Shown here piece after piece: positions 15,001 to 22,616 of a stretch of DNA of 64,000 nucleotides; position 1 is the stretch's first letter, and every line of letters begins with the position of its first letter. A program made the position numbers and the translations under genes. The stretch lies in the NCBI GenBank assembly GCA_002104945.1, contig MCFH01000014.1, positions 62,001 to 126,000 of the forward strand, read 5' to 3'. The notes beneath the pieces were generated by a model that did not search any database, had not been told where the DNA came from, and saw only the letters and a program-made list of their open reading frames with translations. The DNA is from Piromyces finnis finn (taxonomy: Eukaryota; Fungi; Neocallimastigomycota).

Positions 15001-18000
15001 TTTTTTTAATTCTACTTTATTTACAAAATTTATTATATATCAAAGCCAAATTCAATAGTGTAACGAGAAAAAATTGTAATCTAGGCAATTTTATAAACCT
15101 TTCATATATATTTTTCAAATACACATATATATTTATAACATTCCAAGAATTAGTAATCCATTTTATACTTTAGCAAAAGAATTTTCATAAATTATATTTT
15201 ATGTATGTTTATCATAAATCTATACATAAATTTCTTTCACCAATAAATGTTCGAGAAATTAATTAATTTGTTGAATTGATTAAATTGTTAAAAAAACAAT
15301 ATTCTATAAATTAAAAAATGAAAATGAGTTTGTATCCATCTATTTTATTTTATAGACATTTTAAATAAATATGAATATATATTTATTAGTAAGACTGATA
15401 ATTTTTAAGTAAATTGTTATCATCTTATATTTAATAGATTTAAATATTTTTTATTAGTTTTTGGAAAACCTTAGTAGAAAAGTATAACAAATAATAATAA
15501 ATTAATCATAAATTTTAATATATGATCTATTGAATTTTTCTAAAAAGGAAAGATTAAATAAACTTTTTTATATTAAATAAAGTTTATATAAAGAATAATT
15601 AAATTATATTAAAGTAGAACAAACTCATAGATCAAAGGAAAATTAAACATTAAAAAATATTAATTATTTCCTTTTTAAGGTTTGGAATTTAATATAAATA
15701 TTTTATTAAGTATTTTATCACCCTTTTCAATCAATTTAATTAATATATTGAAAATAATAAGGTGATTATATTATTAATAAACTTTATTAATTATAAATGA
15801 CTTGTTGAAATCAAACTCTGTCATATATAGAATTTTATTATTATTGGTTAACGAATATCAATAAAATAAAAAAAAGAAAAAAAAAAAAGAAAAATATTCT
15901 AAAACTACTACCACCATATAACCATGAAATATAAAAGTTTACAATTTCGTTATTAAATACTAATACGATGAAAGAAAATTCTTTATTCCTATTTTGAAGC
16001 GATATATCTTATAATCCTAGTTAAAAGAATATAATCCATATATTTAATTCTTATAAATTCCTTTTTTTTTTTTTACAAAAAAAAGTAACAAATATCATCT
16101 ATTTATTGTACATTTTATCTTCTTTTATGTATTGAATAAAATATATAGGATGTAATAATGTTAACAGATAAAATCATTATATGAATTATATGATAAATTA
16201 CACATATTTATATACAATAATATAATATAAAGTTTATAATTTTCCCCATATTACATAAAACTCTAATAATAAATGGTAATATAAAAGATTATTGTTATTA
16301 TCCACCTACAATTTCTTTTCTTTTTCTTTTCTTTTTTTTTTTTTTTTTTTTTGAATTAATAAAAAGTTCTTATTATATCTATGGCATATAATGTCATATA
16401 ATATGTATATATATATTAAACATTTTTATTAGTGTTATTATACCTATATACTAAAATACTATTTGTTACTTATTTAAAATTTTAAGAACAATTGACTAAA
16501 AAAAAGTAATATTTCTTTTTTTATTTTTTTTTATATAAAAAATACCTATTATAACAAATGTTGTTTTAATTTTTTTTTTTTTTTAGACAAAGAAGAGAAT
16601 ATACTTCTTGTATATATTTATTTAATTTATAATTGTATTAGGTGATAACACAATTGATAAAATAAATAATAAATAAAAATAATTAAATATAAAGATATAA
16701 ATATAAATAAAAAATAAAATATAAGTTGAATAAAAGTTCAATGAACTAATTTGTACTGTGTGGGATTGATCCTTTCTTAATAGATTAAATGAAATAAAAA
16801 AAAAAGTAACGATCAGATATGATAGTGTGATGTTTCTTCCATGAGTTCTTAATGTTTTCATTCAAAGAAATATAATATATATCCTAGATTAGATCCAATG
16901 GCCAAAATTTCAGCCAGAGATAAAAATTTCTCCTGGAAGAAGTTCTGGCTAAAAAATCTCAAAAAAATCATAACATTGAACCCTGTGTAAGGAACATTAG
17001 GAATGCTCTTTTGCTATATTGGTACGATGTCGGTGCTCTTGATTACATTAGATGTCTTAACTAAATCTATCAAAAAGTAGCTTCATAGAGTTACTAATGA
17101 TAATAGGGATTGTTTTAGTAAGAAAAGACTTTCTATATATGGAACATGAGACCCTAACTGTTCATTCAAATGTCTTTGTTCCACCTTATCAAAAATAATT
17201 TATAAAGTATCAAGATAAAAATAGTAATAATATATTGTATGAATTAGAAATAATGTCTATAGCCTTATAAAGTTAATTACTGGTTAATGAAAAAAATTCA
17301 TTTAAAGGAATTAATTAATAATCCATAAAAGAGTTCGATTATATGAATAAATCAACTAGAAGTTTATATGTTTTATAAATGTTTATTTCATTTTAAAAAC
17401 ATATGAAATAAAAGTATATTCAATTTTAATTAAGATTTTCAAATTAATTGTTTCAAAAAAAAAAAAAAAATAAAATAAAATAAAATTAAATAAAAAAAAG
17501 TTAAAATATAAAATATTTCTTCTTTTTTTTCTTTTTTCTTTTTTTTTATTTCTTAAAATGTAAAGATAATTTTTTATACACTATATAATAATCTGAATAT
17601 TTAAGTAAATTAAATAATTTTTAAAAACATATTAAAATATAAAAATTTAAAGTTTTTTATTAACATCATCAATTATTAGTTGTACATTTATATAAAGTAG
17701 ATAAATAATATAATAAACTTTTATTTCTTTTTTTCTTTTTCTACATAAAATAAATAAATAAAAACTGTAACAACAACAACAGTAAAAAGCAATAATTGAC
17801 TAAAGTTTTAACTTTTAATTTTTTTTAAAAAGTAATTTTTTATATAAATTTTTATAATTAATATTAACCAATCATTTTTTTAAAAATGTTTAAATCTTTC
17901 AATTTTTTTTTTTTAAAAAATAATATTGAAACAAAAAATAATTATTAAAATTTTAATAATTATTATAATAATATTATTATCTCAAAAAACAACAAAAATA

Positions 18001-18116
18001 TAAAGTCTAGATATACAAACACACACACATATATATTTTTTAAAAAAAAAAAAGTGTCAATAAACTCATTGAATAATTTATTATAATATATTTTGAATTA
18101 ATTTTTTTTTTTTAAA

Positions 18117-21100
18117 ATGGAAGAAACAAATAAAAGAATTCTTGACAATTCATCTCCAGAAGTTGAAAACAATGATGCAAAAAAAGTCAAAATTGATGTA
18201 GAATCTTCAGTTGAAAACAGTAGTAACAATGAAGTTTCTATGACTAATGTTGAAGAAAGTAGTTCAGTAGAAGCTTCTAATACTGAAGTTACCGAAGCTT
18301 CAAATACTGTTGAAACTACTATTGAAGAAACAGATAATAACGAAGAAGATAAGGAACAACAAACTGAATTTAAAATTAAGATTGAAAAACTTCCACAATA
18401 TATCAATATTCCAGATTTAAGAAAAATATTCCAAAAATACGAATTAAGATTCTGGAAATGTAAAACTAATTTAAAATGGGATTTTGCTTTTGCTAGCTTT
18501 AAAGTAAATATCAATAAGTAATATAATTTGATAATAAGAAAAAAAAAAAAAAAAGACCAATATAGTATTACTCTTTTTGGTGTAAATAGTTAATATTGAA
18601 TAGAAATAAATATAAAAGTTAAAGAAAAAATAAAGTAGAAATGTAAATCAAATTTGATAATATAAATGAGGAAATCGATTAATAAATGAAATGTGAATTT
18701 TGGAATTTCATTAATTAATTGTAAAATCAAGTTATCTTAATTTAAACTTAAAATTATTATTTACACAGAGAAAAAATAAAATCAATGAAATTTTGAACCG
18801 ACAAGTATTAAATAATCGAAACCAAACATAACAATTACTTTGAAATATTTCAATATAATCATAAATAATAGGAAATTAAATTTTAAAAGATTAATTTGAA
18901 ATTTATAAATTATTTTTTTTTTTTTAGTTATTTATTATTTATAAATATTTATTTACTTACGAATTAAACTAACAAATTAATATATATATATATATAATCT
19001 AATAAGTCTGAAGAAGAAAGACAAGATGCTATCAATAAATTAAATGGCTTAAAAATTAAAACAAGTAATATTGTTGTAATACCAATTAACGATGTAACTA
19101 TTTTTTTTTATTTTTATTTTATTAGTATAATAAAGTTTATTCATTTTATTAATATTAATTTATATATTTACCATATATAATATAATCATTATATATCCAT
19201 TAAAGAATAAAGATAAAGAAAAGAAATTTGAAAAAAGACCAAGTAACATAAGTAGAAAGGGTAATGTCAAAGAACCAGAACCAGAAGATACCAGAACCCC
19301 AAATGAAAAATTAATGGATCAAGTTACTCCATTCTGGAGGTACATTAAAATTAAAAAAAAAAAAAAAAAAAAACATTTTAGCATATATCATTATCCATTT
19401 GATTAATTAATTAATTAATTACTTATTATATATAATTATTTATAAATTATTTTCGGTAGATTTGAATATAAAAAACAAATTTTCAAAAAAGCTAGAATTA
19501 ATAAGAAGGTTCTTAGTGCTATGGTTAGAACTTTTAATCAAAAAGGTCGTTACATGGAAGATAAACAAAAATCTCAATTAGGTTGGGTTAAGGAAGCGTA
19601 AGTAGAATTTTTTTTTTTTTTTTTTTTTTTAAATTTAAAATTTACAATAAAGATATGATATTAATTAGTTTTAAGCCAATTTAAAAATGAATATTATAAT
19701 AATCAAATTAAATATTTATTATTTATTATATTTAATATATGCTTCATAAACATATTATAATAAATATAAAATAGTTCTGACGCTAACCGTGGTTTAATTT
19801 GTCCACTTGATGAAGTTGTTAAGTCACCAGTTTTAACTCATTATAGAAATAAATGTGAATTTACTATTGGACATGATTTTGAAGGTCAAAGAACTATTGG
19901 TTTTCTTTTAGGTTTATTCCGTGAAGGTGTTACTGTTGTTTTAGGTATAGATGAATGTGTTCATGTCCCAGAAAAGGCTAAAGCTGTTGTTAAGCATTTC
20001 CAAGTAAATATATATATATTAATTATTAATTCAATCCATACCTATTTGAAATTACAAATAAACTGATTAATTAAAAAAAAAAAAAAAAAGGAATATATTC
20101 GTAAATCTGATTTAGATGCTTTTAGTAGAAAAGGTCATAAAGGTTTCTGGCGTTTACTTACTACTCGTTTCTATAAAACTGGTGAAGGTATAATTAAACA
20201 TTTTAAATATGCATTATTCCCCCTTTTTTTTTTTTTTTTTTAGTTTTATAATATTCTTTTTATATTTTAATTATATTAAACTAAAATAAATAATTATTAT
20301 AATATTTTTCTCACCTTTTTTTTTTTTTTTTTTTTTTTGTTATTTACTCTTCAGATATGATTATTATTCAAGTTCACCCACAAGATCTTTCAAGAGAAAG
20401 AATAGAACAAGAAAAGAAGAATTTAGTAACTTTCTTTACTGATTTAATGGAAAAGATTCCAGATTTACATATTTCTAGTTTACTTTTCCAAGAATCTGAT
20501 GAAGTTTCTAATGGTGCCACTGAAAAAGCTGAAATGGAAGTTTTAATGGGATCAAAATATGCTCATGAAAACCTTTTAGGCATAAAGTAAATCATCTATA
20601 TATATTTATAGTATTAAATATATATAAAATAAATATTAATGCTTTAATTCCTTTTTTTTTTTTTTAAAAAAAAAAAAAAATAGCTTTAGAATTTCACCAA
20701 ATGCATTCTTCCAAGTCAACACTGATGCTACCGAACTTTTATACACAACTATTCGTGATTGGTGTATTGATAGTGTTGGCAAAGATAAAAAGATTGTTTT
20801 ACTTGATATCCTTTTAATTTCAATCTATCTATATATATATATTTAATATTCAATAATTCTTGATTTAATTTCCCCAATAATTATTTTATTATAACAAAAA
20901 GTTATTCCTTAACCTCCTTTTTATCTATTTATCTTTTAATTTTTTTTTCCTCAATTATAATAATTTATATCAATACATCTTTGTTGTGGTACAGGTACTA
21001 TTGGTATTTGTATGGCTCAATACTTTAAACGTATTGTTGGTATTGAATTATGTGAACAAGCAGTTGTTGATGCTCGTTACAATGCCGAAACTAATAACAT

Positions 21101-21764
21101 TAAAAATGTAGAATATATCTGTGCCAAAATTGAAGATGCTATGAAGGGTGTATTTAATAAAATTGGTCGTGATGAAGAAGTTGTTGCTGTACTTGATCCT
21201 CCAAGAACCGGTGTCCGTATCCTTTTTTTTTTTTTCATGAATTATATATTTTCAATATTAAATATATATCTATATATGTTTATAGATCTAAAAAGAAAAA
21301 GTATATATTATTATTCCTTAATTTCTGTTCTTTTTTCCATTTCAATTTTTTTTTTTTACTTTTAATAGATGGATCTGTTATTCAAGCTATTCGTGAATGT
21401 GCTGGATTAAAACATTTAATTTATGTTTCATGTGATGCTAATGCTGCTATTCAAAACTTTATAGAGTAAATTTAAATTTAAATAGATATAATAATATATA
21501 TATATATATATATTATTTTTTTTTAAAAAAGAAAAAAATTTTATAAATTATAATATAGAAATTAAACAACAATCATGATTTTTAAATTTTTTTTTATTAA
21601 TACCTCTTTTCTTTATATATTTTATATTTATAATTATTAGTCTTTGTAGACCAACTTCCAATAGATACAAGAACAATTTCTTTAAACCAGTTCGTGCTAG
21701 ACCATTTGATCTTTTCCCACAAACTAGACATTGTGAACTTGTTATTGATTTTAAGCGTGATTAA
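18117..21764 (+). CDS. TRM2: tRNA (uracil-5-)-methyltransferase TRM2/TRMT2A; 11 exons: 18117-18503, 19007-19093, 19206-19339, 19460-19597, 19775-20003, 20091-20187, 20355-20586, 20684-20805, 20977-21216, 21369-21465, 21641-21764
   Basis: The spliced frame is continuous. It contains an RRM-like N-terminal part, YRNKCEFTIG, AFFQVN, SAM motif LLDLCCGTGTIG, GIELCEQAV, LDPPRTGVH, IYVSC and DLFPQTRHCELV. Confidence 0.94.
20806..20976 (+). other. U12-type (minor spliceosome) AT-AC intron in TRM2
   Basis: 5' end ATATCCTTTT, branch consensus TTCCTTAAC at 20905-20913, 3' end ...CAATAC. Removal restores G|AT (Asp) in LLDLCCGTG. Confidence 0.93.
21217..21368 (+). other. U12-type GT-AG intron in TRM2
   Basis: 5' end GTATCCTTTT, branch-like TTCCTTAAT at 21314-21322, 3' end ...TAATAG. 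Removal restores DPPRTGVH|GSVIQAIR. Confidence 0.88.
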
Positions 21765-22004
21765 AACTATTCCTCACTTTTTAGAATTTAATTTTTTAAT
21801 TTTTAAATTATTTTTTTTTTTTCTTTAATTCATTTCGTTTTAGTTTAATTTATATATTAAATATTATTATAATAACAACTACAACAATTACAACTTATAA
21901 AAAAAAAAAAAAACATATATTTAGAGAATAATGCAATAATAATAATAATAAAACATATATATATTATTATAAGTATACAAACTTTTTTTTTTAATTGCAT
22001 TAAT

Positions 22005-22048
<44 letters not shown>

Positions 22049-22616
22049 TTATAATTTCATAATTACATAGAATTATTTAAAGTTGATTAAAATAAAAGAA
22101 AAAGGGATTATTTTTTTTTTATTATATTTTATTTTATTTTATTATATTTAAATTTTTATTATTATTATTATTTTTTGTTTGGTGATATAATTATTACTGT
22201 TTTTTTTTTTTTTTCACTTATTTTATGGAAATGATAAAGATAGATTTAATTTATCCTTTTTTTTTTTTTCTTATCTTCTTTTTCTAAACTAGGATGAATG
22301 GAATAAAAAAAAGAAAAGAAAAGAAAAAATACTTATTATCTATATTATATTAAATAATAATAAAATAAAAATATTTTTATTAAATATAGAACAAAAATAG
22401 TACTTTTTTTTTTTTTATATATTTACTATATTTTTTTTATTTTTATTTTATTTCATTATTATTATTTTATTTTATTATATATATATATAATAGTTATATA
22501 GGATAAAGGATACATATATATATGTATATAAAAGAAAAAGGAGGGAAAAAATAATAATAATAGAAAAAAAAATTAAGCTTTATTTTAAAATCATATCTTT
22601 TTTTTTTTTCCTTTTC

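Follow-up and report, generated by a model that had tools for sequence, protein, structure and literature searches.

An AT-AC intron of very probable U12 type lies within the SAM-binding motif of a TRM2/TRMT2A-like gene in the gut fungus Piromyces finnis

The TRM2/TRMT2A orthologue of Piromyces finnis is interrupted, within its SAM-binding motif I, by a 171-nt segment that we take to be a genuine U12-type AT-AC intron, with a probability of about 0.9. Positions are those of the window, which is the whole 64,000-nt stretch of DNA that was analysed (contig MCFH01000014.1, positions 62,001–126,000, forward strand). The assignment is based on the splicing signals, the restored reading frame, the identity of the spliced product with a public protein, spliced RNA from relatives and the snRNA genes of the genome. 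We infer that the intron is removed by the minor spliceosome. The gene and the two exons that flank the intron are as follows.

18117–21764, plus strand: TRM2/TRMT2A-like tRNA (uracil-5) methyltransferase gene; 11 exons, 10 introns, 628 codons plus stop
18117–18503, 19007–19093, 19206–19339, 19460–19597, 19775–20003 and 20091–20187, plus strand: exons 1–6
20355–20586, 20684–20805, 20977–21216, 21369–21465 and 21641–21764, plus strand: exons 7–11
20684–20805, plus strand: exon 8; its last base, G, opens the motif I Asp codon, and it matches FRISPNAFFQVN...KIVLL of the homologues
20977–21216, plus strand: exon 9; remainder of SAM-binding motif I and the methyltransferase core (PF05958, Methyltransf_25, Methyltransf_31)

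The 11-exon model contains a single stop codon, which is the terminal one. Its translation is the same, residue for residue, as the public P. finnis protein P0152 (628 aa), and the public annotation therefore already splices the AT-AC intron. Profile searches were carried out exon by exon, and the joined translation served for the frame check and for the comparison with P0152. Exon 9, searched singly against Pfam, scored 32.8 bits with tRNA_U5-meth_tr (PF05958; cut-off 23), and generic SAM-methyltransferase families also match this exon, starting at its first residues. When exon 9 was compared with protein representatives, a 606-aa relative (P0001) was matched at 95% identity, with IVLLDLCCGTG unbroken. 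A word search with P0001 as the query gave the public title of P0152, 'S-adenosyl-L-methionine-dependent methyltransferase [Piromyces finnis]'. P0001 shares approximately 40% identity with vertebrate TRMT2A over 89% of its own length and 43–45% with Mucoromycota Trm2. Relatives carry the names Trm2/TRMT2A, and LDLCCGTGTIG aligns with fungal and animal TRM2/TRMT2A without a gap. Judged by sequence, the gene is a TRM2/TRMT2A orthologue that encodes a predicted tRNA (uracil54-C5) methyltransferase. Downstream of the gene, 22347–22386 is AT-rich intergenic sequence.

The elements of the intron are listed here.

20806–20976, plus strand: AT-AC intron assigned to the U12 type; 171 nt, phase 1, starts ATATCCTTTT, ends ...CAATAC
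20806–20814, plus strand: 5' splice site ATATCCTTT, the predicted U11 pairing site; identical in P. finnis, the relative L008, Anaeromyces robustus and Piromyces sp. E2
20905–20913, plus strand: branch-site consensus TTCCTTAAC, 64 nt from the intron 3' end
20949–20957, plus strand: weak proximal branch-like motif TTCCTCAAT, approximately 20 nt from the intron 3' end
20975–20976, plus strand: 3' terminal AC, the first AC 3' of the branch motif

Re-reading of the sequence confirmed what the preliminary description had reported: a 171-nt gap that begins with ATATCCTTTT, ends in AC and contains a perfect U12 branch consensus. Exon 8 ends ...AAG ATT GTT TTA CTT G at 20805, and exon 9 starts AT CTT TGT TGT GGT ACA GGT. 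The intron thus splits the Asp codon as G|AT (phase 1), the join reads KIVLLDLCCGTGTIG, and excision restores KIVLL-D-LCCGTGTIG. The G+C content of the intron is 16%, compared to 31% in the TRM2 exons. Around the site there are 74 GT-AG, GC-AG and AT-AC pairs that stay in frame and are free of stops; of these, only 20806–20976 gave LDLCCGTG. Each of the 12 GT-AG or GC-AG pairs deletes CCGTG, which bears out the earlier statement that no GT-AG alternative restores the motif. Since AT stands on both sides of the junction, a shift of 2 nt is possible; canonical ends are found in the AT...AC register only.

U12-type introns are defined by the 5' site and the branch sequence (PMC3584512). The 5' site ATATCCTTT conforms to /RTATCCTTT and the motif TTCCTTAAC to TTCCTTRAY. 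The predicted duplex of the latter with the P. finnis U12 box has an energy of −10.8 kcal/mol. The termini are AT...AC and are not mixed with GT-AG ends. The phase, 1, agrees with the published phase bias of minor introns. The 5' sites of the other eight TRM2 introns are of a different kind (GTAAAT, GTAAGT, GTAACT, GTACAT and GTATAA).

Spliced RNA from relatives and orthologous genomic loci give the same boundaries. An intronless 1,821-nt JGI contig from a close relative (L007; approximately 90% nucleotide identity) aligns to each of the 11 exons in turn, with 20805 joined to 20977. In Anaeromyces robustus, a Logan mRNA contig (L010) contains the whole 638-aa reading frame and untranslated ends. 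It is 100% identical to the A. robustus genomic locus (L009), with the 231-nt orthologous intron removed. That intron starts G|ATATCCTTTT, contains CTCCTTAAT and ends AAATAC|AT. A genomic contig from another close relative (L008) reads ATATCCTTT...GTTATTCTTTAAC...AATAC at the same codon, with the branch motif TTCTTTAAC. The P. finnis intron can be aligned with that of L008 only at the 5' site, the branch island and the 3' end; the remainder has diverged. Across P. finnis, L008 and A. robustus, the branch motif is a conserved island within an otherwise unalignable intron. For P. finnis itself, 0.38–0.43 of the sampled words from 18000–22000 occur in each of four runs, near the exon share, as expected for spliced RNA contigs. 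A word search with residues 405–545 of P0152 for junction-spanning P. finnis protein fragments from RNA contigs returned only distant proteins.

The preliminary description had warned that GT-AG-only annotation will mis-model the gene. The warning holds for GT-AG-only predictors, but not for the public P. finnis model, which is identical to the AT-AC-spliced one. The public orthologue of Piromyces sp. E2 (KZ151413.1, L013:3067–4391) is a 488-aa partial model. The 5' site ATATCCTTT is kept in this species, and the assembly gap then begins. The E2 model is partial because a gap of approximately 1.3 kb of Ns starts inside the AT-AC intron, just after a poly-T; mis-modelling of the AT-AC intron was rejected as the cause of the truncation, as the model ends at this gap.

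The spacing between the branch motif and the 3' end departs from the standard. The optimum distance is 11–13 nt, and it is a characteristic important for recognition (PMC3584512). The distances in the AT-AC intron, and in the intron that follows it in the gene, are as follows.

AT-AC intron, P. finnis: 64 nt from branch motif to 3' end
AT-AC intron, relative L008: 90 nt
AT-AC intron, A. robustus: 116 nt
Next intron (GT-AG), P. finnis: 47 nt
Next intron (GT-AG), A. robustus: 45 nt

The value of 64 nt lies far outside 11–13 nt, and such a long spacing counts against a standard U12-type intron. In the P. finnis, L008 and A. robustus orthologues alike, the stretch that follows the distal motif contains no AC before the terminal one. 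The shuffle statistics for this first-AC rule are weak, with P values of 0.05, 0.09 and 0.48 for the three.

We looked for the same arrangement elsewhere. The 5' consensus RTATCCTTT by itself is not rare, with nine occurrences in the window against 3.3 expected. Other places in the window that carry it (1085, 34853 and 48277 on the minus strand) were rejected as introns; they are devoid of a branch motif and fall within coding sequence or on the strand opposite to it. When ATATCCTTT was required to be followed after 70–100 nt by TTCCTTAAY, 10 pairs were found in the genome and none in the reversed control. Nine of the 10, TRM2 included, are intron-like. In all nine, an open frame is recovered if the intron is ended at the first AC that lies 10 nt or more beyond the motif. 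Most of the junctions of these genome-wide candidates are placed by open frames only, and the distances from motif to 3' end range over 15–68 nt. Two of the other candidates have canonical spacing (15 and 25 nt), and one more has a second, proximal motif. Eight of the nine pairs found in addition to TRM2 (L026–L034) resemble AT-AC introns in coding genes, among them an XPG/FEN1-like gene and the tail of an RNA polymerase subunit; the L026 pair lies in AT-rich non-coding sequence. The junction could be fixed by homology in an NF-YB/HapC gene (L032:1501–1655, G000:C169:121488...). Its upstream exon covers residues 17–48 of HapC (4g91_B) and its downstream exon residues 50–89, so the junction is exact. 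The only TTCCTTAAY motif of this intron is 68 nt from the 3' end, and the distal spacing thus recurs in a second gene, NF-YB.

These distances bear on where the branch site lies. The intron could be of the U12 type with the proximal TTCCTCAAT at 20949–20957 as its working branch site, the distal motif being a relic or an enhancer. This would keep the textbook spacing, since the proximal motif falls within the canonical distance window, and it would agree with the two candidates of canonical spacing and with the third that has a second, proximal motif. We regard it as unlikely. Neither L008 nor A. robustus has the proximal motif in its orthologous intron, whereas the distal one is retained by all three introns, at 64, 90 and 116 nt. 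The predicted duplex of the proximal motif with U12 is only −5.5 kcal/mol, compared to −10.8 kcal/mol for the distal motif. The NF-YB intron has its sole consensus motif at the distal position. The distal motif at 20905–20913 is thus the one that we infer to be the branch site.

A search of the genome for U11, U12, U4atac and U6atac, as the preliminary description had proposed, found candidates for all four. Two score above and two just under the Rfam thresholds, which supports the active minor spliceosome that had been inferred from the intron. The matches, together with those to minor-specific protein domains, are given below.

U12: 66.6 bits (Rfam threshold 53), passes
U6atac: 52.1 bits (Rfam threshold 33), passes
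U11: 38.2 bits (Rfam threshold 39), just below
U4atac: 49.2 bits (Rfam threshold 53), just below
SNRNP25-type Ubiquitin_4 domain: 35 bits (threshold 22.8)
zf-U11-48K domain: 27.9 bits (threshold 21.1); this model has low specificity, and the control matched in an archaeon too

Minor splicing in P. finnis is a correct inference that is already known from the literature. According to the available part of a 2023 paper (PMC10639083), minor introns and minor snRNAs have been published for this species. The available part of a 2024 paper (PMC11347168) gives 129 minor introns in Neocallimastix californiae and a divergent U4atac in Neocallimastix. A search for minor-specific proteins had also been proposed as a check, and the SNRNP25-type and zf-U11-48K domains were found. 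PDCD7 (Pfam PF16021, threshold 27) had no match in the genome, and its control likewise matched nowhere, so that this search carries no information.

The P. finnis U12 retains the GAGUAAGGA box and the Sm site. The U11 gene (L003:1380–1615, G000:C152) matches Rfam strongly in its 3' half. The sequence AAAAAGGGCUUAUG, which is the Rfam consensus of the U11 5' end, is found 120 nt upstream of the Rfam-aligned start, as is AAAAAGGGCUU. The gene therefore probably starts approximately 120 nt upstream of the aligned start, at AAAAAGGGCTTATG, and this suggests a long AT-rich insertion in stem-loop I, which would account for the sub-threshold score. A SNORD14-like match (52 bits, threshold 64) is located approximately 550 nt downstream of U11 on the opposite strand. 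Cofolding of U4atac and U6atac gave a stem II of 11 bp, in which CGUCCUUAUCU pairs with AGAUAAGGACG. Some of the changes in stem II are presumably compensatory relative to the human sequences, as is, we assume, the pairing of UGGCA with UGCCA in stem I.

The U6atac of P. finnis is divergent. UCCUU in the 5' splice site is the usual pairing partner of the AAGGA box of U6atac. The locus (L002:1501–1649; G000:C112:211500–211648) is the sole U6atac-like locus in the genome, and it has GCCGA in place of the AAGGA (box GCCGAGAGA). The P. finnis locus reads ...UAUGAGCCGAGAGACAGUUGGCAC, whereas each of five U6atac sequences obtained from metagenome contigs has ...UAUGAAAGGAGAGAAGGUUAGCAC; likewise, P. 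finnis has GCCGAGAGACAGUUGGCAC where all five have AAGGAGAGAAGGUUAGCAC. The AGC triad is GGC in P. finnis. The box for pairing with the 5' splice site is therefore lost, and the predicted duplex is −3.3 kcal/mol, compared to −10.3 kcal/mol for the canonical box. In a pairing scheme drawn up by hand, U12 and U4atac seem to compensate for the changes at other positions. The poor pairing of U6atac with the 5' site counts against the minor-spliceosome reading of the TRM2 intron.

It can also be read in favor of excision by the major (U2-type) spliceosome, and U2-dependent AT-AC introns do exist, as the available part of PMC1557818 describes. We consider this highly improbable for TRM2. The 5' site matches the U12 consensus in full, unlike those of the other eight TRM2 introns, the U12 branch consensus is conserved between species, and the minor snRNA genes are present in the genome. 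That 20806–20976 is not an intron, and instead an insertion, a pseudogene break or an assembly artefact, can be dismissed: the frame is restored exactly, the product is identical to P0152, orthologous introns are found in two other genomic sources, RNA of relatives is spliced, and the word share over 18000–22000 is near that of exons in all four runs.

Removal of the intron by the minor spliceosome could proceed as follows. The 5' end of U11, AAAAAGGGCUU, would pair with ATATCCTTT, and the GAGUAAGGA box of U12 would pair with TTCCTTAAC at 20905–20913, leaving the branch adenosine bulged. The U4atac/U6atac.U5 tri-snRNP would join next, and the first AC downstream of the branch would be used as the 3' end. 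Excision of the 171 nt would rebuild the Asp codon and the SAM-binding LLDLCCGTG. Retention of the intron would bring a stop after approximately 20 codons, and the product would not have the methyltransferase domain.

The following intron of the gene is also U12-like, of the GT-AG subtype.

21217–21368, plus strand: second U12-like intron, GT-AG, phase 1; 5' site GTATCCTTT, with TTCCTTAAT at 21314–21322

The two neighbors share the TATCCTTT core, a branch motif approximately 100 nt from the 5' end, and phase 1. They differ in that the second has GT-AG ends and a position shared with clam and bird. The possibility that intron 8 is a copy of intron 9 was rejected, as the alignment (z = 0.89 against shuffles) shows similarity limited to the signals. 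Intron 21217–21368 lies at the His codon after PPRxGx, and the clam and bird introns at this position are U2-type with GTAAGT. In Phycomyces and Gigaspora, an intron is found 10 nt upstream of the position. The position shared with clam and bird suggests that 21217–21368 is an ancient intron whose type changed in one lineage.

The AT-AC intron has a different distribution. The animal comparison that the preliminary description had proposed found no intron at this codon in clam (Mercenaria) and bird (Ammospiza), and the codon is also intronless in Spizellomyces, Cladochytrium, Chytriomyces, Phycomyces and Gigaspora. Among the fungal and animal lineages sampled, the position thus occurs in Neocallimastigomycota only. 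Such a restricted position could reflect either a lineage-specific gain or repeated loss.

Compared with the U12-type AT-AC introns of animals and plants (PMC3584512), the TRM2 intron has the same /ATATCCTTT, TTCCTTAAC, AC terminus and phase 1, and the pairing boxes of U11 and U12 are intact in P. finnis as in those systems. It differs in the distance of the branch motif (64 nt, and 64–116 nt in the orthologues) and in a U6atac without the AAGGA box. The minor introns catalogued for Neocallimastigomycetes (PMC10639083 and PMC11347168, from the parts available) are of the same organism group and the same intron class, and the public annotation underlying such catalogues contains the TRM2 AT-AC intron. 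The TRM2 intron, its branch spacing and its phylogenetic restriction are not described in the available parts of these two papers. We tentatively suggest, while holding it to be doubtful, that anaerobic gut fungi have a modified minor spliceosome, in which the branch site may lie beyond 10–26 nt, the first downstream AC or AG is used at up to approximately 116 nt and a single U6atac functions without AAGGA pairing, and that the U12-type intron of TRM2 was gained, as a rare event, in this lineage. The unusual U6atac, the spacing of the branch motif and the limited distribution of the intron position should be taken as leads and not as established findings.

The occurrence of minor splicing carries little weight by itself, since it has been published for P. 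finnis and the public model already has the intron. The intron does provide a clean example of a catalytic motif, the SAM-binding motif I of a tRNA methyltransferase, that is present only once minor splicing has taken place, and gene predictors limited to GT-AG can usefully be tested on it. The spacing, the first-AC rule, the U6atac and the intron position are relevant to the question of how strictly the minor spliceosome adheres to its rules of spacing and pairing. An AT-AC position unknown outside the Neocallimastigomycota in the lineages sampled here bears on whether U12-type introns can be gained.
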